Of a DNA stretch of 64,000 bases, positions 3,318-62,253 are shown in pieces (position 1 is the first letter of the stretch; each line of letters begins with the position of its first letter). Source of the stretch: Guillardia theta CCMP2712 (taxonomy: Eukaryota > Protista > Cryptophyta); NCBI RefSeq assembly GCF_000315625.1, contig NW_005434612.1, positions 267,038 to 331,037 on the forward strand, in the 5' to 3' direction. The notes beneath the pieces were generated by a model. The model was not told where the DNA came from, searched no databases, and saw only the letters and a program-made list of their open reading frames with translations. Both the position numbers and the translations under genes were made by a program.

Positions 3318-3413
3318 AGTGTTGCTAGATGTCGATGATGAACCTCTCATGTACAGTAAAGGGATCAGATAAGAATGGAGAGCGGTAGGCCGGTTCAGAG
3401 ACGCTGCGGCACT

Positions 3414-6400
3414 CTAGAGAAAACCCGCTGCCTCGTTGTCCACGTGCCATGGTGTGTCCTTGCCTTGCGCATACCTCCAGGGCAGGTATGAGGATAGGAG
3501 GGCAAGGGAGGGAGTCTTACCTGGCAGGGGGGAGCGAGTAGGGGAGGGGAAGGGGAGCCTGCAAAAGGCTAAGGAGAAGAAGGAAGAGACTAGTAGAAGG
3601 AGGAACGAGGAGGAGGAAACGAGTAGAAGGAGGAATCGATGAGGAGGAGAAGCTATGGTTGCTTCCAACCTCAATGTTGCTTGCACTCTCACGGCAAGAG
3701 ATGGTGGAGAAGAAGGACAAGTGACGCTTCTTGCCATTACCCTCGGGCAGGGTGGTAGTGGCTGCTAATGTTGCCTCCTCCTTGGCCTGCCTTCCTCCAC
3801 AGGTGCAGGAAAAATCTCATGGAAGTCAGTGAGGGAAGTTTGGATTTATCAGGCTGCTACCTGAATCGTTGTGGAGCAAGCTGGGGAGGAGTAGAACGCT
3901 AAATTCGTAGCTGGTGATGCTGATTTGACTGAATTGAAATCAGAGAAGCAGGAGCAGGAAGCAGGAGCAGGAGCAGGAGCAGGAGCAGAGGCAGGGGCAG
4001 GGGCAGGGGCAGGGGCAGGAGCAGGAGCAGGAGCAAGTGCAAGTGCAAGTGGACGAGGAGCGGCTCAGGGAGGCTTAACCTTGCATTTTTCTCAAGTCTT
4101 CCCCAGGCAGCACCAGAGAGGTTGTGGGAGCCAAGCAGGATCCACGCTACCCGAGTAGGAGAGGAAGGGGAGGACGAAGGCGAGAAGCGAAGCCATGTCT
4201 TGATGTGCGGCATGGCTCGCCTGCGGAGCTGAGGGTCCGAAGAACCTGGTGAGAGCAGGTGAGAGGAGGAGCAGGGGCAGGTGATCGTACCTGAGGACCA
4301 GCGACAGAACATCTTCAGCAAGAAAGGCTTGTGAACATTCTTAGAGAAGCCGGGGATACTGACAGGACGTAAGAAGTGCCACCCGTATACTGCTCTTCTC
4401 CGTCGCTTGTTCTCTCCCTCTCCCTCCTCTCCCTCCTCTCCCTCCTCTCCCTCCCGACCCCTCCTCCAACCTCCTCCCTGCCTTCTCCTCTCACCGTTCC
4501 TCTTACCTTTCCCCCATGGTGTAGCCCTTGGAGGATGTCCTGACCTCCTCCATGGTTGGCCAAATAAAGTGAGGAGGCTCCTCCGGCCGCCCGATGTTTT
4601 TCCCCTCGGTGTTCTGAAGGAGACGATCGACGGGGGCACATCAGCGAGCAAGAGGCAGCGGAGGCTTCAGCAGGGAGAGACGAGGAGAGGAAAAGAATGA
4701 GTGGGACATTGGGAGGGCAGGACAAGGAGGGCACGGCAAAGGAAGCTGGGTGAGGAGTAGAGAAGAAAGGTCACCTTTCCCTCACACAAGGAGGAGGTGA
4801 ATTCTTCAATCCACTTCTCGCTCAGGGATCCAATTGAAGTGCATTGCCAAACCTGGAGTGCAAAACCTTGAATCGTCATTGCTACAAGCTCCTTCCCCCG
4901 AAGACAGTAGCATACAACTCTCCCTTTCCTTCCTCTACTCTCTCATCATTTCTTCTCTTCTGTCCTCCGCAGCGACTATTCTGGTGCCGCCCCTCTCCTC
5001 TAGCCTTGGTCCCTCCCTCCCTCCCTCCCTCCCTCCCTCCCTCCCTCCCTCCCTCCCCTCTCCTCCTCTCACCATAGGACACTTGTTGAAAAGCGGGTCG
5101 AAAGTTTCTCGTGACAGAATTCTGTTGATGCAGCAATGAGAACAATCGGTCAAGGAGGTCTAGATCGTCCCACCTCCTCATCTTCATGTGGCCCCACATG
5201 TGCATCTTCTCGCCCTGGTGCCTTCCAGGTACAGACGCTACAATCTTTGCCCGCGCCTGAAAAACATGTTGTCCTTGTCATTTTCACCATCACCACCACC
5301 ACCACCACCGTCATCAACATCGTCATCATCATCTTCATCACCACCACCACCATCATCATCTTTGTCTTCATCAATCATTGTCATCATCATCGTCCTCGTC
5401 CTCGTCATCATCATCGTCATCATCATACTAACATTTTTGAAACTGTATCTACGAAGGTATTGAGCGTCGAGCTTCGACCCGCAAGGCAAGGTGGTGCCTT
5501 TCCATTGCGTCGCTTGAAAATACGACACCAGGTCATCTTCAAACTCACTCCTTTCCTCCCCCTGCAGCAAACAATTCAGAGCTATGCTTGCTCCTGTTTC
5601 CTCTCCTCCTCTCCTCCTCTCCTTCTATCTCCTTCTGCTCCTCTGCTCCCCTCCTCCTCTGCTCGTCGTTGCTTTTGACCATCTCCACTCCTATTTACTT
5701 CTTTCCTCTAGTATCATCTTCCGCCTCCTCCTCTTCCTCCTCCTCCTCCTCCCGTCGACCTCACCTCTCCCTTCAACGGGAAGTCCTGAGCCCATAGAGC
5801 ATCGGTCATATCGTAGTGATCGCCATGAATGTGATTCGCCGTCATCACCACCACCCTCACCCCCGTGTTGTACCCCAGCAACATCACTTTGCTGTGGTGG
5901 ACGCCGTACTGGGGCGTCGGAGGCGCGTAGCGAACGATGGAGGAGGAGGAGGGAGGCGAGGCGAGGGAAGAGAGGAAGGGATACATGAAGACAACTCTGG
6001 GGATGGAGGAGAGGAGAGCGATCTCTGACAGCAGCCAGCGCTCTTGCACCATGTAGTTGGTGAAGATGGCCCAAAGAACGTCTCCTTGCACCACGTCCCT
6101 CAGGCGGACTGCTTGCTCGTTGCCCGGCTCCTCGATCCCGTCGGTGTGGAACAGCCAGAACCCCCTCCCGTCTGCTACGAACTCCCTCCTGCCGTTCCTC
6201 GCAGCTCCCGATGCAGCAAGCCCTCTGAGCTCCTCCTCCTGGAGCATCCTGGCCAGCTTCTCATCCTCCTCCATGGAGGGAGCAGCCCTTGCTCCTTCTT
6301 TCCGTGGGACTTTGCTTGAGGGTCCAGCATGCTCTTCCCCAGCCCTGCTCCTCTTCGTCCTTGGATGGTCATCTTCGTCAGAGTCCAGCACTATCACCTC

Positions 6401-7050: not shown

Positions 7051-10000
7051 TCAAACGTCTGCGTCAGACATCTCCCACTCGTGCTCCTCGTTGGTCAGCG
7101 AGAGGCGGGAGTTGCGGAGGTTATCGATCACCTCCTCTAGCTCCTCCTTCCTCCTCATCGACTCCCTGATCCTCCTCTGCATCTGCATGCGCAAGTCAGC
7201 AGCGGCGGCATGCACGGGCAGCCGGCATGACCTGAAGGTGCTCCTTCTCCCTCTCCTTCAGCTCTGCCTCGATCCTCTGGACCTCACAGTCCATCCTCGG
7301 GTGCTTGTACGCCATCCTCTTCAGCCTCACCAGCTCGGCCCTCTGAATGCTGACCTGCTGGTTCTCCTCCACCTGCGTCCAACCCTCCTCCTCAGCAGCA
7401 GCCCAGCACAGGCTCCCCCTCACCTCATTCAAGAAGATGCAGACGTGCACGCGGTTGGAAGGGCTCTCGAACTTGACCTCCACCTCGTCCTTGTCCGCCA
7501 GCATGCTCCAGGAGACTCTCGCTGCGGGGCTGCCGACCCCTGCCCCCCAGCTCTCCTCCTCCACCACCCTATCATCCTCCTCCTCCTCCTCACCCTCCTG
7601 GACCCGATCGGGGTCGTTCCACCCGCTCGCTCCCCCCCAGAACGTGGACGAGTTCTGCACGATGACGCTCCCTCTCTTCCTGCACACGACGGAGATGCCC
7701 AGGTTGACAAACCCTGTGAGGCTGGAGACGCCTCGCAGCCGGAACACGTACCATCCTCCCTCCTCCACCTCCACGTCCCGCTGTACCACTTCCTCCCTCT
7801 CGCTGTCCTGCAAGCACAGCAGGAGCATAGTAGAGTCCGTTGCCGCCATGGCCAGCTGCGGGCTGGTCTCCCAGAGCATGGAGGCAGTGGTGGTGAGCCC
7901 GAGACGGATAGCAAGTTCCTCCAGCGTACTGATGTTCCCCTGGATCGTGTGGAGCCTGGGCTTCCGGAGAATGTCCTCCCCCTCCAGGGTGACTGTAAAC
8001 TTCATCTTCCCCTCCTCCTGCCTCGACGGACTCCCCGTCGAGCTGCCTCCCTCCTCGCTGTAGGACAAATGCAGCTCCCTCCTCCTCGACGTCACGGGGC
8101 GGGAGATGCGGCCAGCGATCTCATGGCACCTCCTGCTGCACTCGCTGAGCTGCATGCTCGTTTCGCGGAGGGAAGCGTGCAGCGGCTCGATGACCTCCCT
8201 CCTGTCTGCCATCACGTCAGGCGCGTACGGGGGATCGACCTCGTCTACCTGCGAGCAGGCGGTGCTCCCGGACATCCTGCTGGATTTTGGTTGCTGTATG
8301 CACGCTGACAAGTTGTGAAGTGAGCAAGAAAATTGAGAATGAAAATGTGGCAGAAAGGGGGAGGGGGGGGGGGAGGAGGAGGAGTAGAAATAGGAGCAGG
8401 AGCAGAAAGAGGACGAGGATTGGAACGAAGATTCGAGATAACAAGGATGAAGACAGGGAAACAAGGACAAAGATCGATGCGAGCCAACAAGAAAGACGAA
8501 GAAGGCAAGAGAGGAAGAGAAAGAATCTCAGTATTATCGGCCGACAACGGAGTAGGAGAGAGAGAAGATTGCGGTCCTCACAAGGAATCAAGATGCATGT
8601 AGATGGTGCTCTCAACATCATGGAAGCGGAACAAGGAGTTCATCCTCATCATCTGAAGATCGCTCGTCCGCTTATCCTGCAGTATCCTCCTCACTCACTG
8701 CGACTCTCCTCCTCCCACCCACCTGGATGGTGGAGATCGTGTCTAGGATGCCTGCTCCTCGGTCCTGCAAGAGCTCAAGAGCCTGGACCTGTTGCCTCGT
8801 CTCTGCTGCCTTCCTTTCCGCTGCTTCCTTGCTCCTTGATATGTGCGATCGGGCCTTCTTCACTCTCTCCACGTTCTCTTGCAAAACGCGCTGGAGCAGT
8901 TTCTAGCATCCATAGTAAGCCAAGGCAGCCGCTGGAAGGGGAGTAGGGAGGGGAGCAAGAAAGGAGGCAGTGAAGGAGGGAGGGAGAGGGAGGGAAATGG
9001 AGGGAAATGGAGGGAGAGGGAGGGAGGGAGAGGGAGAGGGAGGGAGGGTGGGGGAGGGAGGGGGGGTAAGGAAGAGGGAGGAAGAGGGAGGGAAAGGGAG
9101 CGGGCGTACCTCCTTCCTCCTTAGATCTTCCGCTTCTACTTCAGTCTTGAGCATCTTGATCAGCACCTGTCAAACATGTCTGTGGGTTTGTTTGGAGAAA
9201 TGTCGATGATGGTAAGTCACCTCATTGAGAGACTTGAGATTTCTCCTCCTCTCTTCCTCCACCTGGGCACCACGGGACCGGAGGGCTTTCGCTGCATGCA
9301 TCCCCTGCGTGTCTGCGGCGCTGAACATCTGAGAAATCTTGTCATCGACGATGAAGGTGAAGGAGAAATGAGAGGGTTGAGAGCAGAGGGGAGAAGTTGA
9401 AGGCAAGAGGTAGAAGAAGCCCACCTCTTCCAACGAGTTCAGCCGCTGCTGATATGCTTGCACCTGAGACTCGAGCGCTATCTTGTCATTCTCCCACTTG
9501 CTGATCATTTTCTGGGCATTGTTGCGAAGATCTTCTTTCTTCTTCACAAATGGATTCTCGGCCGAGATAGTATTGAGACTTTGGTTCAAAGTGTCCAAAG
9601 AAGAGAGATTTTGATCCTTTCGATCCTAAACATCTGTAAGATACCAAAGGCGAGAAGGAGCAAGAGGGTAAGGGAGCGAGGGAAATACAAAGAAGGTGAA
9701 GAAATACTTGTAAAATTTGCAGGAAGTGAGCAAAAGCTCGATCGCAAGAGACGAGCTTCGCGATCTCAAACTTCACTTCCTCAGCATCGTCGGCTTTCTT
9801 GAGGACATCAAGAAAGTCCTCCTGCAAACATCGTTTCATGCCAGGTCGTGTCATGTCGTGAACCGTCAGAGTCACAGCCGCACGTCACTAGAGAGCAGGG
9901 GGTTGGTGTTGCAGACAAGACAGACGACTGATCCACAGAAAGAAGATGTGCAGGAAAGAATCAAGGATGGGTTGAGGCGAGGAGAGAGGAAGGAAGGCAG

Positions 10001-11014
10001 ACAGGTTTTCGCGAAGGCGCCTTACTTGAGCAGCATGCTTGTTGTGCAATACTTTGAACAGATCCTGCAATAAATTTGCTCAAACAAGGTTCGCCATTCG
10101 TGGGGTGCACAATCACCTCCACGCTCTTCTCGCAATCAGGTCGATTGCATGCACTCCACTGTCCATAAAACTTCTCTTCCCACTCAATCACTTTCCTCAC
10201 AAGTGAGAAGACGTTCTCGTTGAAGAGATTGGCCAACTGGCAAGACAGACGCCTTCAGCACCAACGCATCGCACACTCACTGCACACACCTCCACCTCGC
10301 TCTTAAGATCTCCTGGGCTGGGCAGACAGCCTTCCAGGTCCTCCCACACCTTCTGCAACCTCGGCATAACTAAATCTCGAATGATGCAAGGAGGTGAGGA
10401 CCTTTACACGGCACAAAAGCTCGACATTCCCGTCATTCTCGGACTGCACATATCTCGCCATCATCCTTTGTAGGTCTTGCTTGCAGTTATCAAAGATCTC
10501 GAAACTGTTTTGTCGCTCCTCTTCAGCAAACCTTCACCAGACAGGTCATTGTTGAACATTACGGCTGTGCATACGAACTCACTCGATTTCGCTTTCATGA
10601 ACCTGCATTCGAAGGTGATCAAAGTCTGCGGCGACCACGTCGTCGTCATCGCGCACGAGTCTCTTGCACTTGAAAACAATCTTACAAGAAAGAAAGATAG
10701 CGAAACAAGTCAATGTCTGGCAACCTTCTGCTGAAGAATGTTTCGTACATCTCCCGCACATTCCTCGACAAGGAGCCAGTGAGACGACGACTGCATGAAA
10801 TCCTCCCTGAAGCTCAAGGTTCATTCGAGCAGCCAACAGTGACAGTGCTAATGGAAAGATGAATATGACGAACAAGCACAAGCTCAAGCTCAAGCTCAAG
10901 CTCAAGCTCAAGCACAAGCTCAAGCACAAGCTCAAGCACAAGCACAAGCACAAGCACAAGCACAAGCTCTACGGTAGGGAACAACTCACATTGTAGCCAA
11001 GATTGTGACCTCAT
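7051..11014 (-). CDS. Large multi-exon coiled-coil protein of unknown function (could be two genes)
   Basis: Chain of minus-strand coding segments (7196-8310, 8672-8884, 9170-9598, 9888-10236, 10460-10810) with E/K/Q-rich heptads and GT-AG introns; stop at 7051-7053 followed by AATAAA near 7011. Confidence 0.6.
10872..10968. repeat. Intronic (CAAGCW)n hexamer repeat
   Basis: Alternating caagct/caagca units. Confidence 0.9.
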
Positions 11015-11420: not shown

Positions 11421-11554
11421 AGGCACTGAGTTTAGTCAACGATTCGAGGCCGTCGAAGAGATACAATGGCCTCTCTTTACCACACGAGATGCTGACGGCA
11501 AAAAAGATTTCCGAAAGGAGTGCGCCACTCTGATCCCGCAGCAGACACCACACC

Positions 11555-11878
11555 ATGAGAATGCACACCAGCCAGAGCCTCCAAGACCTCCCCACCATCC
11601 AGGCTGACTTCAGCGCCCTCCTCGTCCATGACCATGACGACGAGAGCGAGCTGAGCTCACAGCAGAGCCTGGCCTCTCCGCTCTCTCCCCTGCCAGCGAG
11701 CAGGCGCAGCAAGGAGCTCGACACGGCCGAGTCCTACGAGGCGAGGCGCATGCAGGCGCTGGAGAGGATGCCGAGCCGACAGAGGCAGCTCCAGGCACTG
11801 GAGCACTGCATCCGGCTGCTCACCTCACCGGAGCGACCCGTGATCACGAGCGCGACGGGCCAGCGGATGCAGCTATGA
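11555..11878 (+). CDS. 107-aa unknown protein, copy 1 (inverted copy)
   Basis: MRMHTSQSLQDLPTIQADF...GQRMQL; strongly GC3-biased codons; AATAAA at 11958-11963. Confidence 0.7.
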   Translation: MRMHTSQSLQDLPTIQADFSALLVHDHDDESELSSQQSLASPLSPLPASRRSKELDTAESYEARRMQALERMPSRQRQLQALEHCIRLLTSPERPVITSATGQRMQL

Positions 11879-12663
11879 GGGGGAGGAGGGAGAGAAGGGG
11901 GGCGACGAGGGAGGGATAAGAAGGGATGTACGATAGGGAGGGGGGGACCGCTTGTATAATAAATGGCATGGATGAATGAAAGGGATCGAGTCTTGGGTTG
12001 TAGGATGGTTTTTCTCCGTTTTTCTACTACTCGCTGGTACTTCCTTGCTTGTCAGACGTTGCAAAAGCATGTATGGTTCCATGCATATTCCTCCTGTCAT
12101 TCCTCCTTCATACATAGTCTTGTCATAGAACGTAAGCATGAGTCATAGACTGTATTCCTTCGAGGATATTACTGTCACTCCTGGCAGCAAGTTGCTGGGT
12201 AAGGATTGTTGTGCTTTTATGCCCTTATTAGCGCAAGTGTTGTTACACACCGATTCAGATTCCTAGTCAAAATGAATGAGTCCTACTCCACCAGCCTCCA
12301 AAATAAAAGAGCCTGATTCCTTACGTGTTGGGCTCGACAATCTTGAATTGAAGAAGGTTGTAGGTTGCTCTAGGAAGATTTTCAACCAAAACACAGTGAC
12401 TCATGCTTACGTTCTATGACAAGACTATGTATGAAGGAGGAATGACAGGAGGAATATGCATGGAACCATACATGCTTTTGCAACGTCTGACAAGCAAGGA
12501 AGTACCAGCGAGTAGTAGAAAAACGGAGAACAACCATCCTAAAACCCAAGACTCGATCCCTTTCATTCATCCATGCCGTTTATTATACAAGCGGTCCCCC
12601 CCTCCCTATCGTACATCCCTTCATATCCCTCCCTCGTCGCCCCTCTTCTCACCCTCCTCCCCC

Positions 12664-12987
12664 TCATAGCTGCATCCGCTGGCCCGTCGCGCTCGTGATC
12701 ACGGGTCGCTCCGGTGAGGTGAGCAGCCGGATGCAGTGCTCCAGTGCCTGGAGCTGCCTCTGTCGGCTCGGCATCCTCTCCAGCGCCTGCATGCGCCTCG
12801 CCTCGTAGGACTCGGCCGTGTCGAGCTCCTTGCTGCGCCTGCTCGCTGGCAGGGGAGAGAGCGGAGAGGCCAGGCTCTGCTGTGAGCTCAGCTCGCTCTC
12901 GTCGTCATGGTCATGGACGAGGAGGGCGCTGAAGTCAGCCTGGATGGTGGGGAGGTCGTGGAGGCTCTGGCTGGTGTGCATTCTCAT
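12664..12987 (-). CDS. 107-aa unknown protein, copy 2 (Q10H variant)
   Basis: Identical to the other copies except SQSLHDL for SQSLQDL. Confidence 0.7.
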   Translation of the reverse strand: MRMHTSQSLHDLPTIQADFSALLVHDHDDESELSSQQSLASPLSPLPASRRSKELDTAESYEARRMQALERMPSRQRQLQALEHCIRLLTSPERPVITSATGQRMQL

Positions 12988-13997
12988 GGTGTGGTGTCTG
13001 CTGCGGGATCAGAGTCGAGGAGGGAGCAAACTGGCCGTGGCTGTGCCGTGTGCCGTGAGCCAGGAATATCCTTGTTCTATGCACCAGTAAGGAGCCATGC
13101 ATCAGCAGGTCACGCGGATCGACTCCTTGAATGAGTGAAGGAGGCGGAGAAGGTCCTTACTACAGATGCCAATGGTCATTGCTGACGGTATAAAACTAAG
13201 ATTCCGATTTCCGGACTCGGGGTCGGCCGGGACTCGGACCTGTCATGGCCCAGGATTGTTGCGGCCCGGCATCAGAGGCCGCGGCGGGTACTCAACCGTC
13301 CGACGCCGGACTCACCGTGGCACTGCCCTGAGCGACGTCAGCCCAAGCCTTCCATCCCGCGTTTACGGTTCAATCGGTTGTCGCAGCCATCATTGCTGGC
13401 CCTAGGTTCCCGAGTTCCGAGTTTCAGCGACGTCTGCTGCATGCGGCAGTGCCCGTCTGATCCTGCCCGCAGTCAAGTGAGCAGTGGGAATGAGGATTGG
13501 AGTAGGCTCTTTCTCTGTCCGACGGACGCATCTGATCCCCGCGCTCGGAAGATCTCGTGGAGGGTCGTGAGGCCCGACTGTGATGAGTGAGCATGCTCGA
13601 TCAGGGAAGAAGCTATCTTACAGCAGAGATCTCCCTTGAGGTGCATGATGGGGAGACAGCTGAAGCTGAGTCATGAGACTTGGCCAGCACACACTGCTGT
13701 GTGATAGTGGCATCCTTGGCCGCGTGGGCAGTCGTAGTGACGTAGTGACGTGATTTCTCGCTTGTCAATGGCATGCCAGCACTCGCCCGATCAACGCGAG
13801 AGCAGGTGGTCAGTGCCTTGATGCTTCCAATTGAAGAAAGCGTACAAGAGAACTTGCAGGAACCAATCACCAATGCAGCATCAGCCAGATCTCTCTCTCT
13901 CTTTCCATGCCGTTTATTATACAAGCGGTCCCTCCCTCCCTATCGTACATCCCTTCTTATCCCTCCCTCATCGCCCCTCTTCTCTCCCTCCTCCCCC

Positions 13998-14321
13998 TCA
14001 TAGCTGCATCCGCTGGCCCGTCGCGCTCGTGATCACGGGTCGCTCCGGTGAGGTGAGCAGCCGGATGCAGTGCTCCAGTGCCTGGAGCTGCCTCTGTCGG
14101 CTCGGCATCCTCTCCAGCGCCTGCATGCGCCTCGCCTCGTAGGACTCGGCCGTGTCGAGCTCCTTGCTGCGCCTGCTCGCTGGCAGGGGAGAGAGCGGAG
14201 AGGCCAGGCTCTGCTGTGAGCTCAGCTCGCTCTCGTCGTCATGGTCATGGACGAGGAGGGCGCTGAAGTCAGCCTGGATGGTGGGGAGGTCTTGGAGGCT
14301 CTGGCTGGTGTGCATTCTCAT
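13998..14321 (-). CDS. 107-aa unknown protein, copy 3
   Basis: Translation identical to copy 1. Confidence 0.7.
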   Translation of the reverse strand: MRMHTSQSLQDLPTIQADFSALLVHDHDDESELSSQQSLASPLSPLPASRRSKELDTAESYEARRMQALERMPSRQRQLQALEHCIRLLTSPERPVITSATGQRMQL

Positions 14322-15308
14322 GGTGTGGTGTCTGCTGCGGGATCAGAGTCGAGGAGGGAGCAAACTGGCCGTGGCTGTGCCGTGTGCCGTGAGCCAGGAA
14401 TATCCTTGTTCTATGCACTAGTAAGGAGGCGAATGTCCAGGTGTATCGGGGCCATGCATCAGCAGGTCACGCGGATCGACTCCTTGAATGAGTGAAGGAG
14501 GCGGAGAAGGTCCTTACTACAGATGCCAATGGTCATTGCTGACGGTATAAAACTAAGTGTCCGATTTCCGGACTCGGGGTCGGCCGGGACTCGGACCTGT
14601 CATGGCCCAGGACGCCGGACTCACCGTGGCACTGCCCTGAGCGACGTCAGCCCAAGCCTTCCATCCCGCGTTTACGGTTCAATCGGTTGTCGCAGCCATC
14701 ATTGCTGGCCCTAGGTTCCCGAGTTCCGAGTTTCAGCGACGTCTGCTGCATGCGGCAGTGCCCGTCTGATCCTGCCCGCAGTCAAGTGAGCAGTGGGAAT
14801 GAGGATTGGGGTAGGCTCTTTCTCTGTCCGACGGACGCATCTGATCCCCGCGCTCGGAAGATCTCGTGGAGGGTCGTGAGGCCCGACTGTGATGAGTGAG
14901 CATGCTCGATCAGGGAAGAAGCTATCTTACAGCAGAGATCTCCCTTGAGGTGCATGATGGGGAGACAGCTGAAGCTGAGTCATGAGACTTGGCCAGCACA
15001 CACTGCTGTGTGATAGTGGCATCCTTGGCCGCGTGGGCAGTCGTAGTGACGTAGTGACGTGATTTCTCGCTTGTCAATGGCATGCTCGCACTCGCCCGAT
15101 CAACGCGAGAGCAGGTGGTCAGTGCCTTGATGCTTCCAATTGAAGAAAGCGTACAAGAGAACTTGCAGGAACCAATCACCAATGCAGCATCAGCCAGATC
15201 TCTCTCTCTCTCTTTCCATGCCGTTTATTATACAAGCGGTCCCCCCCTCCCTATCGTACATCCCTTCTTATCCCTCCCTCATCGCCCCTCTTCTCTCCCT
15301 CCTCCCCC

Positions 15309-15632
15309 TCATAGCTGCATCCGCTGGCCCGTCGCGCTCGTGATCACGGGTCGCTCCGGTGAGGTGAGCAGCCGGATGCAGTGCTCCAGTGCCTGGAGCT
15401 GCCTCTGTCGGCTCGGCATCCTCTCCAGCGCCTGCATGCGCCTCGCCTCGTAGGACTCGGCCGTGTCGAGCTCCTTGCTGCGCCTGCTCGCTGGCAGGGG
15501 AGAGAGCGGAGAGGCCAGGCTCTGCTGTGAGCTCAGCTCGCTCTCGTCGTCATGGTCATGGACGAGGAGGGCGCTGAAGTCAGCCTGGATGGTGGGGAGG
15601 TCTTGGAGGCTCTGGCTGGTGTGCATTCTCAT
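15309..15632 (-). CDS. 107-aa unknown protein, copy 4
   Basis: Translation identical to copy 1. Confidence 0.7.
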   Translation of the reverse strand: MRMHTSQSLQDLPTIQADFSALLVHDHDDESELSSQQSLASPLSPLPASRRSKELDTAESYEARRMQALERMPSRQRQLQALEHCIRLLTSPERPVITSATGQRMQL

Positions 15633-16606
15633 GGTGTGGTGTCTGCTGCGGGATCAGAGTCGAGGAGGGAGCAAACTGGCCGTGGCTGTGCCGTGTGCCG
15701 TGAGCCAGGAATATCCTTGTTCTATGCACCAGTAAGGAGGCGAATTTCCAGGTGTATCGGGGCCATGCATCAGCAGGTCACGCGGATCGACTCCTTGAAT
15801 GAGTGAAGGAGGCGGAGAAGGTCCTTACTACAGATGCCAATGGTCATTGCTGACGGTATAAAACTAAGATTCCGATTTCCGGACTCGGGGTCGGCCGGGA
15901 CTCGGACCTGTCATGGCCCAGGATTGTTGCGGCCCGGCATCAGAGGCCCGCGGCGGGTACTCAACCGTCCGACGCCGGACTCACCGTGGCACTGCCCTGA
16001 GCGACGTCAGCCCAAGCCTTCCATCCCGCGTTTACGGTTCAATCGGTTGTCGCAGCCATCATTGCTGGCCCTAGGTTCCCGAGTTCCGAGTTTCAGCGAC
16101 GTCTGCTGCATGCGGCAGTGCCCGTCTGATCCTGCCCGCAGTCAAGTGAGCAGTGGGAATGAGGATTGGAGTAGGCTCTTTCTCTGTCCGACGGACGCAT
16201 CTGATCCCCGCGCTCGGAAGATCTCGTGGAGGGTCGTGAGGCCCGACTGTGATGAGTGAGCATGCTCGATGAAGCTGAGTCATGAGACTTGGCCAGCACA
16301 CACTGCTGTGTGATAGCATGATGGGGAGACAGCTGGGCAGTCGTAGTGACGTAGTGAGCACACACTGCTGTGTGATAGTGGCATCCTTGGCCGCGTGGGC
16401 AGTCGTAGTGACGTAGTGACGTGATTTCTCGCTTGTCAATGGCAGAAAGCGTACAAGAGAACTTGCAGGAACCAATCACCAATGCAGCATCAGCCAGATC
16501 TCTCTCTCTCTTTCCATGCCGTTTATTATACAAGCGGTCCCCCCCTCCCTATCGTACATCCCTTCTTATCCCTCCCTCATCGCCCCTCTTCTCTCCCTCC
16601 TCCCCC

Positions 16607-16930
16607 TCATAGCTGCATCCGCTGGCCCGTCGCGCTCGTGATCACGGGTCGCTCCGGTGAGGTGAGCAGCCGGATGCAGTGCTCCAGTGCCTGGAGCTGC
16701 CTCTGTCGGCTCGGCATCCTCTCCAGCGCCTGCATGCGCCTCGCCTCGTAGGACTCGGCCGTGTCGAGCTCCTTGCTGCGCCTGCTCGCTGGCAGGGGAG
16801 AGAGCGGAGAGGCCAGGCTCTGCTGTGAGCTCAGCTCGCTCTCGTCGTCATGGTCATGGACGAGGAGGGCGCTGAAGTCAGCCTGGATGGTGGGGAGGTC
16901 TTGGAGGCTCTGGCTGGTGTGCATTCTCAT
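16607..16930 (-). CDS. 107-aa unknown protein, copy 5
   Basis: Translation identical to copy 1. Confidence 0.7.
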   Translation of the reverse strand: MRMHTSQSLQDLPTIQADFSALLVHDHDDESELSSQQSLASPLSPLPASRRSKELDTAESYEARRMQALERMPSRQRQLQALEHCIRLLTSPERPVITSATGQRMQL

Positions 16931-18028
16931 GGTGTGGTGTCTGCTGCGGGATCAGAGTCGAGGAGGGAGCAAACTGGCCGTGTCTGTGCCGTGTGCCGTG
17001 AGCCAGGAATATCCTAGTTCTATGCACTAGTAAGGAGGTGAATTTCCAGGTGTATCGGGGCCATGCATCAGCAGGTCACGCGGATCGACTCCTTGAATGA
17101 GTGAAGGAGGCGGAGAAGATCCTTACTACAGATGCCAATGGTCATTGCTGACGGTATAAAACTAAGATTCCGATTTCCGGACTCGGGGTCGGCCGGGACT
17201 CGGACCTGTCATGGCCCAGGATTGTTGCGGCCCGGCATCAGAGGCCGCGGCGGATACTCAACCGTCCGACGCCGGACCCACTGCCGGCCACGCCGGAATC
17301 CGATGCTCCGACACTATAACAACAGTTGAGGAAGAGATCTGAGGTTATTCGAGCAACCTGAGGGGCGTCAGCCCAAGCCTTCCATCCCGCGTTTACGGTT
17401 CAATCGGTTATCGCAGCCATCATTGCTGGTAGGTTCCCGAGTTCCGAGTTTCAGCGACGTCTGCGGCATGCGGCCGTGCCCGTCTGATCCTGCCCGCAGT
17501 CAAGTGACTCTCAGCAGTGGGAATGCGGATGGGGGTTAGCTCTCTCTCTGTCCGACGGACGCATCTGATCCCCGCGCTCGGAAGATCTCGTGGAGGGTCA
17601 TGAAGCCCGACTGTGTTGAGTGAGCATGCTCGCCCAAGGAAGAAGCTATCTTGCAGAGATCTCCCTTGAGGTGCATGATGGGTGGAGACAGCTGAAGCTG
17701 AGTCATGAGATTTGGACAGCACGGCTAATGAGTGTTAGTGGCATCCTTGGCCGCGTGGGCAGTCGTAGTGCCGTAGTGACGTGATTTCTCGCTTGTCAAT
17801 GGCATGCTCGCACTCGCCCGATCAAAGCAAGAGCAGGCGGTCACTGCCTTGATGCTCCCGACTGAAGAAGGCGTACAAGAGAACTTGAAGGATCCAACCA
17901 ACAATGCAGCATCAGCCAGATCTCTCTCTCTCTTTCCATGCCGTTTATTATACAAGCGGTCCCCCCCTCCCTATCGTACATCCCTTCTTATCCCTCCCTC
18001 ATCGCCCCTCTTCTCTCCCTCCTCCCCC

Positions 18029-18352
18029 TCATAGCTGCATCCGCTGGCCCGTCGCGCTCGTGATCACGGGTCGCTCCGGTGAGGTGAGCAGCCGGATGCA
18101 GTGCTCCAGTGCCTGGAGCTGCCTCTGTCGGCTCGGCATCCTCTCCAGCGCCTGCATGCGCCTCGCCTCGTAGGACTCGGCCGTGTCGAGCTCCTTGCTG
18201 CGCCTGCTCGCTGGCAGGGGAGAGAGCGGAGAGGCCAGGCTCTGCTGTGAGCTCAGCTCGCTCTCGTCGTCATGGTCATGGACGAGGAGGGCGCTGAAGT
18301 CAGCCTGGATGGTGGGGAGGTCTTGGAGGCTCTGGCTGGTGTGCATTCTCAT
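18029..18352 (-). CDS. 107-aa unknown protein, copy 6
   Basis: Translation identical to copy 1. Confidence 0.7.
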   Translation of the reverse strand: MRMHTSQSLQDLPTIQADFSALLVHDHDDESELSSQQSLASPLSPLPASRRSKELDTAESYEARRMQALERMPSRQRQLQALEHCIRLLTSPERPVITSATGQRMQL

Positions 18353-18887
18353 GGTGTGGTGTCTGCTGCGGGATCAGAGTCGAGGAGGGAGCAAACTGGC
18401 CGTGGCTGTGCCGTGTGCCGTGAGCCAGGAATATCCTTGTTCTATGCACCAGTAAGGAGGTGAATTTCCAGGTGTATCGGGGCCATGCATCAGCAGGTCA
18501 CGCGGATCGACTCCTTGAATGAGTGAAGGAGGCGGAGAAGATCCTTACTACAGATGCCAATGGTCATCGCTGACGGTATAAAACTAAGATTCCGATTTCC
18601 GGACTCGGGGTCGGCCGGGACTCGGACCTGTCATGGCCCAGGATTGTTGCGGCCCGGCATCAGAGGCCGCGGCGGATACTCAACCGTCCGACGCCGGACC
18701 CACTGCCGGCCACGCCGGAATCCGATGCTCCGACACTATAACAACAGTTGAGGAAGAGATCTGAGGTTATTCGAGCAACCTGAGGGGCGTCAGCCCAAGC
18801 CTTCCATCCCGCGTTTACGGTTCAATCGGTTATCGCAGCCATCATTGCTGGTAGGTTCCCGAGTTCCGAGTTTCAGCGACGTCTGCG

Positions 18888-18987
18888 NNNNNNNNNNNNN
18901 NNNNNNNNNNNNNNNNNNNNNNNNNNNNNNNNNNNNNNNNNNNNNNNNNNNNNNNNNNNNNNNNNNNNNNNNNNNNNNNNNNNNNNN
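18888..18987. other. Assembly gap (100 N) inside the last array spacer
   Basis: Run of N; the true copy number may be higher. Confidence 0.98.
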
Positions 18988-19499
18988 AGTGGGAATGCGG
19001 ATGGGGGTTAGCTCTCTCTCTGTCCGACGGACGCATCTGATCCCCGCGCTCGGAAGATCTCGTGGAGGGTCATGAGGCCCGACTGTGTTGAGTGAGCATG
19101 CTCGCCCAAGGAAGAAGCTATCTTGCAGAGAGCTCCCTTGAGGTGCATGATGGGTGGAGACAGCTGAAGCTGAGTCATGAGATTTGGACAGCACGGCTAA
19201 TGAGTGTTAGTGGCATCCTTGGCCGCGTGGGCAGTCGTAGTGACGTAGTGACGTGATTTCTCGCTTGTCAATGGCATGCTCGCACTCGCCCGATCAAAGC
19301 AAGAGCAGGCGGTCACTGCCTTGATGCTCCCGACTGAAGAAGGCGTACAAGAGAACTTGAAGGATCCAACCAACAATACAGCGTCAGCCAGATCTCTCTC
19401 TTTCTTCCATGCCGTTTATTATACAAGCGGTCCCCCCCTCCCTATCGTACATCCCTTCTTATCCCTCCCTCATCGCCCCTCTTCTCTCCCTCCTCCCCC

Positions 19500-19823
19500 T
19501 CATAGCTGCATCCGCTGGCCCGTCGCGCTCGTGATCACGGGTCGCTCCGGTGAGGTGAGCAGCCGGATGCAGTGCTCCAGTGCCTGGAGCTGCCTCTGTC
19601 GGCTCGGCATCCTCTCCAGCGCCTGCATGCGCCTCGCCTCGTAGGACTCGGCCGTGTCGAGCTCCTTGCTGCGCCTGCTCGCTGGCAGGGGAGAGAGCGG
19701 AGAGGCCAGGCTCTGCTGTGAGCTCAGCTCGCTCTCGTCGTCATGGTCATGGACGAGGAGGGCGCTGAAGTCAGCCTGGATGGTGGGGAGGTCTTGGAGG
19801 CTCTGGCTGGTGTGCATTCTCAT
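19500..19823 (-). CDS. 107-aa unknown protein, copy 7
   Basis: Translation identical to copy 1; upstream region is a diverged version of the spacer. Confidence 0.7.
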   Translation of the reverse strand: MRMHTSQSLQDLPTIQADFSALLVHDHDDESELSSQQSLASPLSPLPASRRSKELDTAESYEARRMQALERMPSRQRQLQALEHCIRLLTSPERPVITSATGQRMQL

Positions 19824-20811
19824 GGTGTGGTGTCTGCTGCGGGATCAGAGTGGAGGTGTTCTATTCATGTTTTAGAATCGGGGGCCATGCATATCCTTCT
19901 CGGTCAGCAGGTCACGCGGTACGACTCCTTTGAGTTTACTACAGAATCCACTGGTCATCGTTCCATAGGTGTAAACCCTCATGTGACCAAGTGTATTACT
20001 CATTTCTTCGGACTGGGTGTAACTACCCGATGGCTAAATATTTCAATACAACTTTACTCAAAGTTAATTTCAATATCAGTACCGGTTTTGTACCTCGTTT
20101 GAAATAAAACTCATTTGATGTAAAACGTGCCGGGCCCCCGCCGGGGATCAAGCGCCTGTGGCAACACGGAGCGGCAAGTTATCGCTAAGGTGCTGCGGTT
20201 AAGAGAAGACCTGCCACGAGTCGAGAGAACGGCGGCGATCAACAACCACAAGTCCTTGGCATGCTATGAGGACTCCCGGAGTCCGCCTAGTACCTGAGGG
20301 CCAAGTCGATCTAGCTTCAGCTGAGTACCTTGGGCAAGTGACCTTCAAGGTCGTGCTTCAGTGAGTGACTCGGACGGCGTCCTTCCAAACTGAGCTCGTG
20401 GCTGATATAGTTAAGTTGGCGGGTTCCGAAGCAACGAATCACCTCGGGGCAGGTTGAGGCTTCGGCTCACTGGCTCAGCGGCTGCATACTCTGCCAGTCG
20501 GCCTTGAATGGATTCACTGCAGGCTACCGGCGCCACAGTGGGGAAGTGACGGACATACTCACTGAGAGAGAGAGCGACTGAAAAAAAGATTGACCAGCGG
20601 TGATAGGTGAGATAAAACCGAGAGACAGCGGTACACCTCTCAACTAAAACTGGAAGGTAAATGCTCACTACTCAAACGCTCAGGAAAGGAGAAACGTAGC
20701 ATGCGATGGGAAGGCAGACAGCTGATAGGCCATGGAGGTTGAAGGGAGGAAAGTTAGATGCAACAGGACAGAGAAAAGTACATATGTAGAGATGATGGCG
20801 CTTGTCCCTGT

Positions 20812-20884: not shown

Positions 20885-20946
20885 GGATAACGATCTTTCT
20901 GAGTCGGTTCTGATCAGATTCTGACTTGCACGCTCAACTGATCATC

Positions 20947-22327
20947 ATGTTCGAAACCCGAAACATCTTGCTCCTCCTCCTCCTGGCCATGGCGGTGGCG
21001 GTTTCCTCCGACAAGGCCCCCGGTAAGAGGATACATCCCCAGGCTTCAGGGACGAGGAAGAAGCCTTCCAACACTGGGGAGCCACACGAGAAGGTCCTGC
21101 TGCATCAATTAAAGGGCCGTCCGCTCCTCATCCATGGAGGCAAGAATACCCTGCTAACGAGGGCGTCATTGGGGCCCAAGGCCTCCTGGAGGGACTCTTC
21201 GCTCAAGAACTCGTCCAAGTTCTACGGGGAGAGGATCTTGTTGGACTACCAGCAGTACATCGTGAGGACTGAGAACCCAGTGAGGAGAGGGCTTCTGCAG
21301 GAGCTGAGGGAGATGGAGGGGGTTGATGCGATACGATACGTTCCTTACGACACATTCATCGTGACTGCATCCCAGAAAGGGTTGCAGCAGTTGATGAGCA
21401 CGCACGGCATATCCGGGATCTTCTATCTCCCCGACGTGTTCAAGTTGGAGCCGGAGATTCGCTTCTCCTTATTCGAAGATGTCAACTACGGGAGGGGGAT
21501 GGCTGGCTTCAAGGGACGGAAGCTGATGGCGGATGAGACTGAGAATGAAGGAGATCAGTCCGTGTATGTGATCCTCGCAATCAGCGACGCGGAATGGTCC
21601 TACCAGACGGTGCAGCTCGTGTCCGACTGGGAGCAGGAGATGCAAGATCTGAACCTCGGCGTTACCTTGAAGACTGTGTCGAAGAGGAAATTGTTGGTGA
21701 AGACGAAGCAGGAGAACATGAAGACAGTCTGTCAGTTCCTGGCGCACAAGCCGCTAGTGCGGTGGATAGAGAAGAAGAGGGAGGTTTTCCTCCGCAACCG
21801 GTATGCTGTCCAGGCGCTGCAGAGCGAGGGAGCAAACATGACGAGCATTTGGAACCGAGGGATCAACGGCTCGTCCCAGATCATCGGGATAGCAGACACG
21901 GGTATGCAGTCTGCAGGAGAAGTAGAGAGAAAGGGGGAGGAGAGGAGGGTGGGGAGGAGACGAGTGGGGAGGAGGAGAGCTGGAGCAAGAGGGAAGGGGG
22001 CAGAAAAGGGAGGTGGAGAGAGGAAACCAAAACAGCACAATACGATCCAAGTGCTATTGTCTGATAGATTCGCAGGAATCGATTATGACCATTGCTTCTT
22101 CAACGACCCTTTTGAAACGGTTGCCAAGTGCACAGGGTCAGGCGATCAGGCGACGCCCTCCTGCTTGAACTATCGGCACAGAAAGATAGTCACCTACCGC
22201 AAGTTTTCCTCTACCGACTACCAGGACTACTATGGCGGACACGGAACACACGTTGCTGGCTCAGTTGCAGGTGAAGAAAGCGAGAGAGGGTGAAGAAATG
22301 ACTGCTGTTCCTGCTCCTGCTCCTGCG

Positions 22328-22358
<31 letters not shown>

Positions 22359-23141
22359 TTGCTCCTGCTCCTGCTCCTGCTCCTTCTGCCTTTTGTTTGT
22401 GTTCTCTTGCTCCCTTCCTCCCTCTTTCTTCCCTTCTTCCTTCATACTTGCATCCTCGCACTCTTGTCTGCCCGCCCTTATTTCGCTCGCATTCCATGCT
22501 CACTCCCTGCGTAGGAAACGCCTACGACGCTGACCCGACCGAGATGAACTATGCTGGCGCCTACAACGGGATGGCGCCGGGAGCGAAGATCGCGTTTGAC
22601 GACGTCGGAGACAGTAAAGGAGCGCTTCCTGGCATCCCCGACGACCTCAACACAGGGCTGTTTCCCCACTCGTATCATGCCGGAGCCAGGCTTCACTCCA
22701 ACTCCTGGGGAGCGAAGTTTGCAGGGTAAGAGATAGGTCGGAGAAGGAGCACGAGTAGAAGGAGACGGGGGGGAGGGGAAGAAGGAGAAAGAGCAGAACC
22801 ATGCATCATAAAAAGATTCAGGAGCAGAAGATTGAAAGCGTTCTTATGATGGGAGTGCACCTGGGGAGTTGGGTAGAGGCAGAGAGAGGAAGAGGGGTCT
22901 GAAGTTGGCCGCAGGTACGAGTCGATGGCGATGGAGATCGATGAATTCACGCACGATCATGATGATTTTCTGGTGCTCGTGGCGGCCGGCAACGATGGGC
23001 CTCATCCGTACAGCATCGGCACTCCAGCCACAGCAAAGAACATCCTCGCTGTGGGAGCCACTGACAACAGCCTCAAGGTTCCTTGCTAGTTCTTTTGACG
23101 ACTTGCACCGTGCTCCCGCTCCCGCCCCCGCCCCCGCCCCC

Positions 23142-24137: not shown

Positions 24138-27100
24138 AAGCAGGAGCAGGAGCAAGGGGAGCAGGGGGGGTGCAGGAGAGAAATGAGAGGGGAGGGAGAC
24201 GTGCAGGAGGAGGGTACGTTGGGAGGACAAAGGAGGAAGAGGGATGGGAGACGTCCAAGGGCCTCACTGCTCGCGGTGCAGGTGGAGATGCGTCGAAAGG
24301 GTTCAATGCTTCTGCTGCCCTCGTGAAAGCTACTATGATCCACTCCGCTCAGGTGTGTGGAGAGGAGATGTAGGATAGAGTTTACAACTTCTATCAAAGA
24401 GGATGAAGAAGGAGGAAGGAAGAAAGAGGGAGAGGACGAGGGAGAGGGAGAGGGAAAGGTGGAGGAAGAGGTGGAGGAAGAGGACGAGGAAGATGAACAA
24501 AGCAGGAAGAGGACACTGTTCCTTCACTAACTCACTCCTCCTTCCACCAGCCTGCCATGGTTCAGTCAGCCTCCGGAGCCTGGGAGTTCCCATCCTCAGT
24601 CCCCAACATCCAGACGGGGTACGGGAGGATCGACCTTAGCAAGGGCCTCTCCTTCTCCGACTCCCCTACTCGCTCCATCTACCGTGACCGAGAGCAAGTG
24701 GACAACGGAGGGGAGCTGTCTGTATGTCTTCACGCCTCCTCCTCCATGCCGTTCAAGGCGACGCTGGTGTGGACGGATCCGGCTGGGGAGTACCTGGCCG
24801 AGAGGGTCCTGGTGAACGACCTGGACCTGATCGTGCAGAACAAGGACGGAGACGTGTGGAGGGGAAACAATTTGAGGCAGAGCGATGAGACGTACAAGGA
24901 CTACGTCGTGAGTGACAACTTACAGAATGCAGAGCAGGTGAGTGGACAGAAGAGAGGGGGAGGGAGAGGGGGAGGGAAAAGATGAGGATGTTTTCAACAG
25001 TGCCATCTAATGTACCTCAGGTATCTTTTTCTGTCTCGTCCCCTGGTCTGCTTGTGGTTCGAGTAGTCGGGGTCGACGTTCCCCTCGGCCCTCAGGCCTT
25101 CAGTCTCGTCCTTTCCGGCTCTGACCTCGTGGTTTGTCCCTCCTCCTCCTCGTCTCCCCCTCCTCTTCTCCCTCGTCCTCCTCTACTGCTGCCTTCCCCT
25201 TCCCCCTTCCAGGTCATCTCCTTTTCGCACCTCCTTGCTTCTCGTTCTCCTCTCTTCCTCCTCAGTCCTACTGCAACATCTCTCCATGCAAGGTCCTTCT
25301 CCTGATGTCGTGACAAGGAGCAACAATCCTCCGCCTGCAGCTCCATCACCTGCCCAAAGAACTGCTCAGGTGAGAGAAACCGTTTCAGTTTTGCTTGCTC
25401 CTCCTCCTCCTCCTCCTCCTCCTCCTCTTCCTCTTCCTCCTCCTTGTCATCATCATCGTTGCCATCATCATAAACATAATCATCATCGTCATCGTCATCG
25501 TCATCGTCCTCATCCTTCCTCGTAATTTCTCTTTCCTGTTTCCACTCCCTTGCCTCTGCCTTTCCTCACCTCCCTCATCTCCCCTTTCCTCACAGTCCTC
25601 ACTCTCCTCAAGCGCACTTGCTGATCGTCTTCTCTCGCACAGGGCATGGCACTTGCCTATCAAACTCCGTCTGCCATTGCGACTTCGAGTACGGAGGTTC
25701 CGACTGCTCCAGGAAGTTTCGGACGTTAGAGCAAGGAGAAAACCATCTTGCTGTCACTGCCAACGGGATGAGCTTTTATACCTTTAATGTGACATCCTCC
25801 TCCTCCTCCTCCATGGCCTGCTCCTCCCCTTCTCTCCTCCCTCTCTTCCCCTTCCCCCCATGGCTCCCCTCGTTCGCTCGTTTCCTCTCCTCCCTCCTTG
25901 GTGACTCACTTCCTCCTCATCCTACCTGCTCTCTTGCCACCCAAACCTCCACTCCTCCTCCCCCCTCTCTCTGTTTCTGAGCTCCCCTGCTTCTCACTCA
26001 ACCCGCAGCTCTCTCACGGCAAGTCCTTCCGCATTATTTGCACGGGCCTTGGGCCGAGCACCGGCTCTGATCCCGACTACTACCTCAGCTACGAGAGGTC
26101 TCCCCTCCATCCCCGTGCCCCCCATCTCCACCACCTTCCCTCCCTGCCTCCCTCCTGTTCCTCCTGTTTCTCCTGTTCCTCCTTTTGCTAGCTCTCCTCG
26201 TCGTTCTCTTCCTTCCTCCCTCCTCCAACCCCCTTTGTGTTCTCCCTCCTTCCCCCCTGACATCCACCTCAGCCTCCCAACCATCGGTGAGTACGTCGAC
26301 GCTGTCAAGGACGAGGGAGACAGCGCCAGTTTTGTCCGCAACCAGGAGCAGGGAGGCATGTGGGTCCTCGGCCTCTACGCGCGATGCTGCGAGGACGTCG
26401 AGGTCTTGGTGGTGCTGGAGATCCAGCCCGGCCCCTTCCCATCCCTCCAGCTCTCTCCCTGCTCCTTCCCCTGTGACTGCCAGAGGTTCACGCAGTCAGC
26501 GGGTCAGATGGAGGACGGCTCGGGCGTCTACACATACAACAACAACGCCAACTGCAGGTGGATCATCTCCCCACAGGGAGGAACACACGGTGCGCTGAAG
26601 CTCACGTTCCCCTCCTTCGACCTGGAGGCCAACTATGACTTCCTCCAACTCAACCATTGCTTTGACGAGCTCTGCTCCAGCACCTCCTCCCTTGCCACTC
26701 TGACCGGCACCGTCTCGTCCTCTGCCTCCTTCGTCGCCTCCAGTGGCATCGTGGAGATTCTCTTCACCTCGGACTCTCTCGTTACGGCAGGAGGCTTCCT
26801 CCTCAAGTGGATGTCCCTCGGTGCTTTTGACATCTGCAACAGCCAGTGCAACTGCGGGATCTTCAACGGCACTCACGGGGTCCTGACGGACGGAGCAGGA
26901 GCAGGAGGACTGTATCCCAACGATGCCTTCTGCCACTGGATCCTCTCAGCACCCCAGGCATCTTGGCTACAGCTCTCCTTCAAGCGCTTCGCTACCGAGC
27001 TCAACTACGACCTGCTGCTGGCCAAGGAGTGCGATGACGCTGCTTGCCGCAGCTCACGGACCATTGGGATCTTCTCCGGCCATATCCAGAACCTCGTCCT

Positions 27101-27908
27101 CCTCTCCACTACCGGTATCATGGACATCGTCTTCACCAGCGACGCAAGCTTGCAGGACAGCGGCTTTGAAGCTGCATGGACCACATCGCTGCTGGCAGAG
27201 GAAGGGTACTCGCCCTCCCCTTCGCTCCCAGGGCCCTGCCCGTCAGGCTACCGCTGCCAGGAGTGCACCAGCCCGTGTCACTGCCAGCAGTTCCTCAGGC
27301 AGGAAGGGCTTGTGACCGACGGGTCGGGCAACCGAGGGCTGTACGAGAACTTTGCCAACTGTCACTGGCTGCTCTCTCCCTTCAACGCTGCCAACATCAG
27401 CATCAAGTTCAACTTCTTCGAGACTGAGCCGGGCTACGACTTCCTCTGCCTCTTCACCTGCAGCGACCCGAGCTGCCTGGACAGGACGGCTCTTAGGAAT
27501 TTCTCGGGCTACTGGACAGGAGAAGAGCTCACTGTCAACGCTCCCGTCCTCGAGCTCGTCTTTCTCACGGACAGCACCGTTCGCTTCCCCGGTTTCGAGC
27601 TCTCCTACCGCGCCATCGTGGACCCCCGCAGCTCCAGCGTCTTCGCCTGTCCTCCTCGCTTTCGCAACTGCTCCTTCACCAGGGATTGGCCGGAGGTCAC
27701 CCCTGAGATCCGCAGCGGACGAGCGGCGACGGGGGGGCTGGGTCACATGATTGTTGTCAACCTGTACGAGGCATGGCTGTGTATCCTCGACCACCCATGC
27801 TCTGAGGTGAAGCCAGACGGCAGCACGGACCCCTTCTGCTTCATCTACAATGAGCAGCTGCTGCGTTTCGAGCCCTGGAATCTCAACTCGGTCATCAACA
27901 TGTACTAG
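20947..27908 (+). CDS. Secreted subtilisin-like S8 protease (KP-43/TagA-like) with PA insert, P/galactose-binding-like domain, EGF and three CUB domains; multi-exon
   Basis: Signal peptide MFETRNILLLLLLAMAVAVSS; catalytic Asp IGIADTG, His GHGTHVAGS, oxyanion AAGNDG, Ser SGTSMATP; PA motif IKRGSCSF; ATLVWTDP..LVNDLDL; EGF GHGTC..CHCD..YGGSDCS; three CUB repeats of the form Y-NNANC-W-I...F-LE-NYDFL...FTSD....GF. Confidence 0.92.
24059..24152. repeat. Intronic (GCAGGA)n microsatellite
   Basis: About 15 units; the same unit occurs at 3947-4035 and as its complement at 22308-22384 and 23140-23228. Confidence 0.95.

Positions 27909-58001: not shown

Positions 58002-62253
<4,252 letters not shown>

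Follow-up and report, generated by a model that had tools for sequence, protein, structure and literature searches.

A seven-copy array of a small-protein gene in Guillardia theta combines a uniform core with diverged flanks and belongs to a large gene family

The region analysed (hereafter the window) comprised 64,000 nt of contig NW_005434612.1 of Guillardia theta CCMP2712, designated C62; C71, C81 and C20 are other contigs of the same genome. In this 64-kb window of the nuclear genome, an intronless open reading frame (ORF) of 324 nt, encoding 107 residues, was present in seven copies, one inverted (c1) on the plus strand and six (c2 to c7) in tandem on the minus strand, the latter with start-to-start distances of 1334, 1311, 1298, 1422, and 1471 nt (Table 1). 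Six of the seven copies were identical at 324/324 nt, and c2 carried a single substitution resulting in Q10H. An initial annotation, made from the sequence alone, had described seven copies with the same translation apart from one Q-to-H change, which the ORF listing and the DNA comparison bore out; it was silent on the inversion of c1. Copies c1 and c2 formed a tail-to-tail palindrome, with 619-nt arms that were 99% complementary and a loop of 251 nt, and had in common a 3′ flank of 173 nt that was unlike the 3′ flank of c3 to c7. A DNA search of the whole assembly (87.1 Mb, 669 contigs) detected seven copies at ≥99% identity, all at the array locus.

The segment common to all seven copies was a 446-bp core, consisting, as initially described, of the ORF with 28 nt of upstream and 94 nt of 3′ flanking sequence; AATAAA occupies core positions 432–437. 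Relative to c4, the cores of c5 to c7 showed no differences, and those of c3, c1, and c2 showed one, three, and four, respectively. The spacers u2 to u6 were 888, 865, 852, 976, and 1025 nt long, the last including the N residues of an assembly gap, and pairwise substitutions among them ranged from 0.7 to 10.2%, with 0.7% for the pair u2/u3 and 1.1% for the pair u5/u6. They also differed by indels of 23 nt (u2), 49 nt (u3), 62 nt (u4), and 64 nt (u5/u6) and fell into two types, A (u2 to u4) and B (u5 and u6), separated by 35 fixed differences between alignment columns 36 and 880; with ~825 ungapped spacer columns, these amounted to a divergence of ~4%. The private indels, previously given as 23, 48, and 60/62 nt, and the second spacer type were thus confirmed. 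A further 37 sites were private to u4 and packed into ~90 columns (221–310), which can be read as one replaced block rather than as independent substitutions. GC content at third codon positions (GC3) was 0.86 in the ORF, in keeping with the strong codon bias noted before, versus an overall GC content of 0.57 in the spacers. Scanning the array for Rfam families and tRNAs returned no match and hence no hidden RNA gene in the spacers. Repeated motifs containing ACGTCA (CACGTCACTACG...) were located ~150–250 nt downstream of each core in the spacers (13016–19405); in sequence they resemble bZIP/CRE-type sites, and u4 carries its variant block there.

In the inner copies, the last difference between spacer types A and B was ~160 nt upstream of the core and the next one 36 nt downstream of it, giving a uniform tract of ~640 nt (~-188 to ~+130) that exceeded the 446-bp core; the limit at -28 was set by the outer copies c1 and c7 alone. 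Upstream of c7, ~-130 to -29 relative to the ATG could not be aligned with the spacers, a decayed spacer homologue was left only in patches, and the sequence beyond this remnant was a unique right flank, although the c7 core was still identical. From -188 to +94 (606 nt), no A/B differences were found, against ~25 expected, or ~8 from untranslated region (UTR) and synonymous sites only (our arithmetic). The gene segment was therefore more uniform than the neutral expectation from the spacers, and core and spacer divergence were unequal, zero in 606 nt versus ~4%.

The ORF had initially been taken for an orphan, unrecognised gene, a view that did not hold. Paralogues found by DNA search shared 72% to 75% identity (73% for the best one) over the ORF only. 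At the protein level, tblastn gave 55 matches in the genome and a profile built from 27 members gave 117, the family being spread over 43 contigs; it thus comprises at least 117 members in G. theta, in addition to relatives in Hanusia phi. All 117 matches were intronless, uninterrupted frames without stops, and 89 of them lay ≤5 kb from another member in local tandem or inverted clusters; adjacent members shared a strand in 37 pairs and were oppositely oriented in 25. Six-member arrays were found on C81 and C20, and among the profile-search matches the array of the window was the largest family cluster in the genome. On C71 (region L063, 127500–135500), four family genes in alternating orientation lie within 3 kb at positions 2644–5595 of that region, the fourth of which has diverged and has a separate orthologue in Hanusia (P0023/P0044).

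When the array gene was compared with three paralogues on C71, the ratio of nonsynonymous to synonymous substitution rates (dN/dS) was 0.30–0.33 over the whole ORF, 0.14–0.17 over the C-terminal 38 codons, and 0.46–0.47 over the N-terminal part. Start and stop codons were conserved both in the paralogues and in complete ORFs of H. phi transcripts. With these dN/dS values and conserved ORF limits, the 107-aa ORF is, judged by its conservation, a real gene under purifying selection, as had been supposed at first; the homologues and the dN/dS below 1 that such a gene should have were both found.

A word search for the family returned eight proteins, from G. theta, H. phi, and one environmental source. 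When 1.84 billion representatives were searched exhaustively with a profile, 32 proteins were obtained at E ≤0.001, all of 69–141 aa; of 20 whose source was traced, 17 were H. phi transcript products (MMETSP/EukProt) and three environmental, and none came from any other named organism. Among the traced matches, the family thus appears to be restricted to the Guillardia/Hanusia clade, as far as HMMER searches of called proteins go, in which small ORFs may be under-called. In a tree of the close subfamily, several G. theta members paired with Hanusia orthologues, and the two Hanusia proteins closest to the array gene grouped with the C71 copies (99/100), not with the C62 copies. With midpoint rooting, the C62 lineage fell outside the group of C71 and Hanusia sequences, so that the lineage would have a greater age than its seven near-identical copies imply. 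No publication on the family came to light in literature searches, which covered locus tags of members as well as tandem arrays and gene conversion in Guillardia.

In alignments, family members were ~80–130 residues long and combined a QxDFxxLxL-like motif in the N-terminal part, an acidic stretch rich in Ser and Pro (pI ~4–5), and a C-terminal block, mostly basic, with which the protein ends. This C-terminal module of ~40–55 residues had the consensus PSRxKQLxALxHCIxLL...ERPxIxSATGxxxxL, with Q78, L79, L82, I86, L88, P95, and G102 being near-invariant. AlphaFold2 prediction with the family alignment assigned low confidence to residues 1–53 and a predicted local distance difference test score (pLDDT) of 87–93 to residues 60–107, with helices at 54–70 and 75–90 and strands at 96–98 and 104–106 forming a beta-hairpin; a model of the domain only agreed with this (mean pLDDT 84). 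The protein had been described as disordered and Ser/Pro-rich with one helix, of which the disordered acidic N-terminal half was retained, whereas two helices and a beta-hairpin are now predicted. Homodimer prediction for residues 48–107 scored 0.02, a value that weighs neither for nor against binding, and the sequence contained no N-terminus resembling a signal peptide. By our reading, the acidic tail contained SP sites and an RRSK site.

Similarity searches assigned the protein to no described group. When the ORF and 17 members were scanned against Pfam, nothing came up except DUF1722 and Alba, each as a singleton below threshold, and a PDB sequence profile search gave no match. A feature-based search of the ESM Atlas reached a best score of 0.75, which is at noise level, and fold searches with the full and domain-only models (Foldseek E ≥2.5; VIA Z ≤4.2; Atlas template modelling (TM) score ≤0.41) returned only generic long helices or coiled coils. 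DUF1722 (PF08349) was rejected, since it matched one of 17 members at 16.5 bits (E 0.011), below the gathering cut-off of 22.5 bits. The MADS-box proteins in the top Foldseek rows were likewise dismissed (E ≥2.5, TM 0.17–0.26, root-mean-square deviation 8–17 Å, no Pfam SRF-TF match). As a tentative guess, the product could be a small soluble cytosolic or nuclear adaptor or regulator, in which the C-terminal module would bind a partner and phosphorylation of the acidic tail at the SP and RRSK sites would tune the interaction; the array would raise its output only if every copy is transcribed.

Homogenisation of the core was also indicated by three short-read environmental contigs (L061, L062, and L067) from three different samples, each carrying a related core. 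In pairwise alignments, the 5′ flanks of L061 and L062 were of the spacer type upstream of c2 to c6, that of L062 with a deletion, whereas the 84-nt upstream flank of L067 was of the c1 type, its positions 18–54 matching 11467–11503 in the left flank of the array at 34/37 nt (E 3e-10), its sole match in the window. The 3′ flank of L067 matched the type A spacer at 121/122 nt. All three environmental cores had in common six substitutions and three indels found in none of the G. theta copies, the indels being a deletion of 2 nt in the leader and, in the ORF, a deletion of 6 nt and an insertion of 3 nt. Since these nine fixed core events are common to the environmental contigs despite their different flank types, the sequences indicate that cores group by lineage and flanks by position.

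The nine fixed events that distinguish environmental from G. theta sequences are concentrated in the leader and within ~170 nt of the core start; further 3′, the two are near-identical, both in the second half of the ORF and in the spacer behind it. This distribution suggests a mosaic, in which a conversion tract would have replaced the 5′ half in one lineage.

Other clusters of the family behaved similarly. Among the three C71 copies (in -, +, - orientation), identity began at ~-45 and ended with the stop codon, the flanks being unrelated, and in the C81 array the ORF was more uniform than the spacer, a milder case. Recombination keeping the cores uniform, as initially proposed, is thus supported by cores that follow lineage and by spacers of types A and B that are ~4% apart but show no difference from ~-188 to ~+130. 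Its supposed confinement to the transcribed part was not supported, because the inner copies were identical ~160 nt further upstream and the C71 tract stopped at the stop codon.

From the copies, the family, the purifying selection, and the homogenised core between diverged flanks, gene conversion is inferred as the mechanism. The array very probably consists of old copies of a real gene, members of a large and young clade family, in which short-tract gene conversion has homogenised the core while the flanks diverged. The copies would be old enough for spacers and outer flanks to have diverged, and the coding core, together with ~160 nt of proximal promoter in the inner copies, would have been overwritten repeatedly by short conversion tracts, the inverted copy c1 included. 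Tracts probably end where homology ends, which would explain why the outer copies share only -28 to +94 with the others, and purifying selection would keep the ORF alignable so that conversion continues. Unequal crossing-over of whole units was probably also active, since u2/u3 and u5/u6 are pairs of near-identical spacers.

It is improbable that unequal crossing-over alone produced the array, in a recent tandem amplification whose cores are identical merely because they are young. The complete identity of c4 to c7 (446/446) would fit such an origin, and the spacer pairs u2/u3 (0.7%) and u5/u6 (1.1%) would fit recent two-unit duplications, but crossovers of whole units should have homogenised the spacers as well, and identical cores instead adjoin A and B spacers that differ by ~4% and a 64-nt indel. 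The outer copies c1 and c7 likewise have identical cores next to unrelated or decayed flanks, and the c1-type junction is also present in an environmental relative and is therefore old. A core copied from RNA, being the mRNA itself and spread or corrected via cDNA by retroposition or cDNA-mediated conversion, would explain a block that runs from a short leader to just beyond AATAAA in an intronless family, all 117 matches being uninterrupted frames; a transcript could plausibly start at -28 and end ~9 nt behind AATAAA, and c1 and c7 have the same limit at -28. This origin is nevertheless very unlikely, as neither a poly(A) tract nor a target-site duplication was present at the core ends, the copies are local rather than dispersed, the identity of the inner copies ~160 nt upstream of the core covers promoter and not mRNA, and the identical tract of C71 ends at the stop codon without a 3′ UTR.

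The spread of the ORF family over 43 contigs, often as inverted pairs, and the antisense ORFs of 84–106 aa that overlap the 107-aa ORF could point to a mobile element or satellite in which the ORF is incidental or non-coding. There is hardly any room for this interpretation, because unit and spacer DNA matched only within the array in the genome search, the ORF alone was conserved between clusters (dN/dS 0.3, start and stop kept), transposase, reverse transcriptase, and integrase domains were absent, none of 17 members matched Pfam, and family members have complete orthologues among the products of Hanusia transcripts. A match to a dispersed transposon family, mentioned at first as a possible objection, thus gave way to a core and spacers unique to this locus. 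A bolder proposal, for which the chances seem slim, is a small-protein system of fast turnover specific to Guillardia and Hanusia, with a new C-terminal fold and with arrays and palindromes kept up by a conversion process that is coupled to transcription or templated by RNA and does not reach beyond the transcript ends; if true, it would be a compact natural model for amplifying and homogenising a young gene family.

Several observations weigh against the interpretation of old gene copies homogenised by short-tract conversion. Part of the spacer divergence consists of replaced blocks and indels and not of substitutions, and the environmental contigs may be chimeras joined at the repeated core, in which case the argument from lineage and position would lose weight. 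In the protein collection, the 107-aa form was absent and the annotated product of 105 aa occurred only in genome-annotation sources; its MMETSP-derived peptides included neither form, and hence no transcript-derived record of the gene was found. A function is backed by no Pfam, PDB, or fold match. Copy number is uncertain as well, since whole extra units may lie behind the assembly gap. The 100 N residues of this gap are inside the c6/c7 spacer, clear of any family ORF. On either side, 30 nt are identical to the preceding unit, and the register across the gap changes from 1422 to 1472, so that, provided that no unit is hidden, the N residues represent ~50 nt (17466–17515 of the preceding unit); no core was found on unplaced contigs of the assembly. 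A 134-aa ORF that runs through the X residues of the gap is spurious.

Tandem arrays of histone repeats, 5S/45S rDNA, U2 snRNA, and polyubiquitin resemble this locus in having head-to-tail units with a complete gene each, a uniform gene, and diverging spacers, and in having copies closer to one another than to their positional counterparts in a relative. Unlike them, the present array has only seven copies, one of which is inverted, and a clade-restricted product outside housekeeping functions. The initial comparison with rDNA and histone genes therefore applies to the mode of evolution, not to copy number or product.

Conversion limited to the coding region is found in the paralogue pairs of Drosophila Hsp70 (87A/87C) and yeast TEF1/TEF2, where identity ends sharply near the ORF limits and the flanks are unrelated, as in c1, c7, and the three C71 copies; those pairs encode ancient, well-known proteins, whereas the family described here is young and has more than 100 members. 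Arm-to-arm gene conversion takes place in the ampliconic palindromes of mammalian sex chromosomes, which the c1/c2 palindrome resembles with its 99% identical arms around a unique loop; the 25 adjacent family pairs on opposite strands are a further likeness. Those palindromes measure 10 kb to megabases versus 0.6 kb for c1/c2, and evidence of testis-like or sex-specific expression is absent here. The mechanism would thus be a textbook one, with nothing new in it, acting on a new and unexplained protein family. What had passed for an orphan is the largest array of an undescribed small-protein family, so far known from one cryptophyte clade, and the mini-domain of this family, as modelled with confidence, matches no known family or fold. 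As a clean small-scale case of concerted evolution, with homogenised tract, decayed flanks, and related environmental copies all open to direct reading, the locus could be used to estimate how long conversion tracts are in a protist that has few such data. Features of the array are compiled in Table 1.

Table 1. Features of the array and its immediate flanks (positions in the window)
Feature	Position	Strand	Remarks
Left flank, upstream of c1	11467–11526	+	Without homology to array spacers
Copy c1, inverted 446-bp core, ORF 11555–11878	11527–11972	+	3 differences from c4, all in 3′ flank
c1/c2 palindrome	11527–13015		Arms 11527–12145 and 12397–13015, loop 12146–12396
Copy c2, core, ORF 12664–12987, Q10H	12570–13015	-	ORF and core comparison
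Spacer u2, type A, private 23-nt deletion	13016–13903	-	c2 promoter side, c3 3′ flank
Copy c3, core, ORF 13998–14321	13904–14349	-	ORF and core comparison
Spacer u3, type A, private 49-nt deletion	14350–15214	-	DNA found nowhere else in the genome
Copy c4, core, ORF 15309–15632	15215–15660	-	ORF and core comparison
Spacer u4, type A, 62-nt deletion and private replaced block of ~90 nt	15661–16512	-	37 'aabaa' sites in columns 221–310
Copy c5, core, ORF 16607–16930	16513–16958	-	ORF and core comparison
Spacer u5, type B, 64-nt insertion	16959–17934	-	35 fixed differences from type A
Copy c6, core, ORF 18029–18352	17935–18380	-	ORF and core comparison
Spacer u6, type B, with assembly gap 18888–18987	18381–19405	-	Gap flanks colinear with u5
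Copy c7, core, ORF 19500–19823	19406–19851	-	ORF and core comparison
c7 upstream region, diverged deletion-bearing promoter-region remnant	19852–19970	-	Patches of homology to spacer and L061/L062 at 19877–19966

The array region is flanked by hexamer microsatellites, (ACAAGC)n and (CTGCTC)n, at 10872–10969 and 22305–22384, and a GAGG-rich tract is located at 9000–9100. The right neighbour (20926–22293, plus strand) is subtilase-like, with a weak Peptidase_S8 match over residues 384–451, and its long ORF includes a stretch rich in Gly, Arg, and Glu that resembles an unspliced intron. Three other ORFs look like ordinary genes, encoding CUB domains (26049–27905, plus strand), a Membralin-like region (28833–30605, plus strand), and a PAS domain (44471–45871, minus strand). 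The products predicted for 36164–41137 (1658 aa) and 34066–36120 (685 aa), both on the minus strand, matched no Pfam family at E ≤1e-5. A second assembly gap of 100 N is present at 58640–58739 of the window. An ORF of 750 aa (47613–49862, plus strand) encodes a DNMT1 replication-foci domain (E 8.5e-9) and a bromodomain (E 3.4e-15); from its domain content it looks like a chromatin reader, with no obvious methyltransferase domain in this exon.

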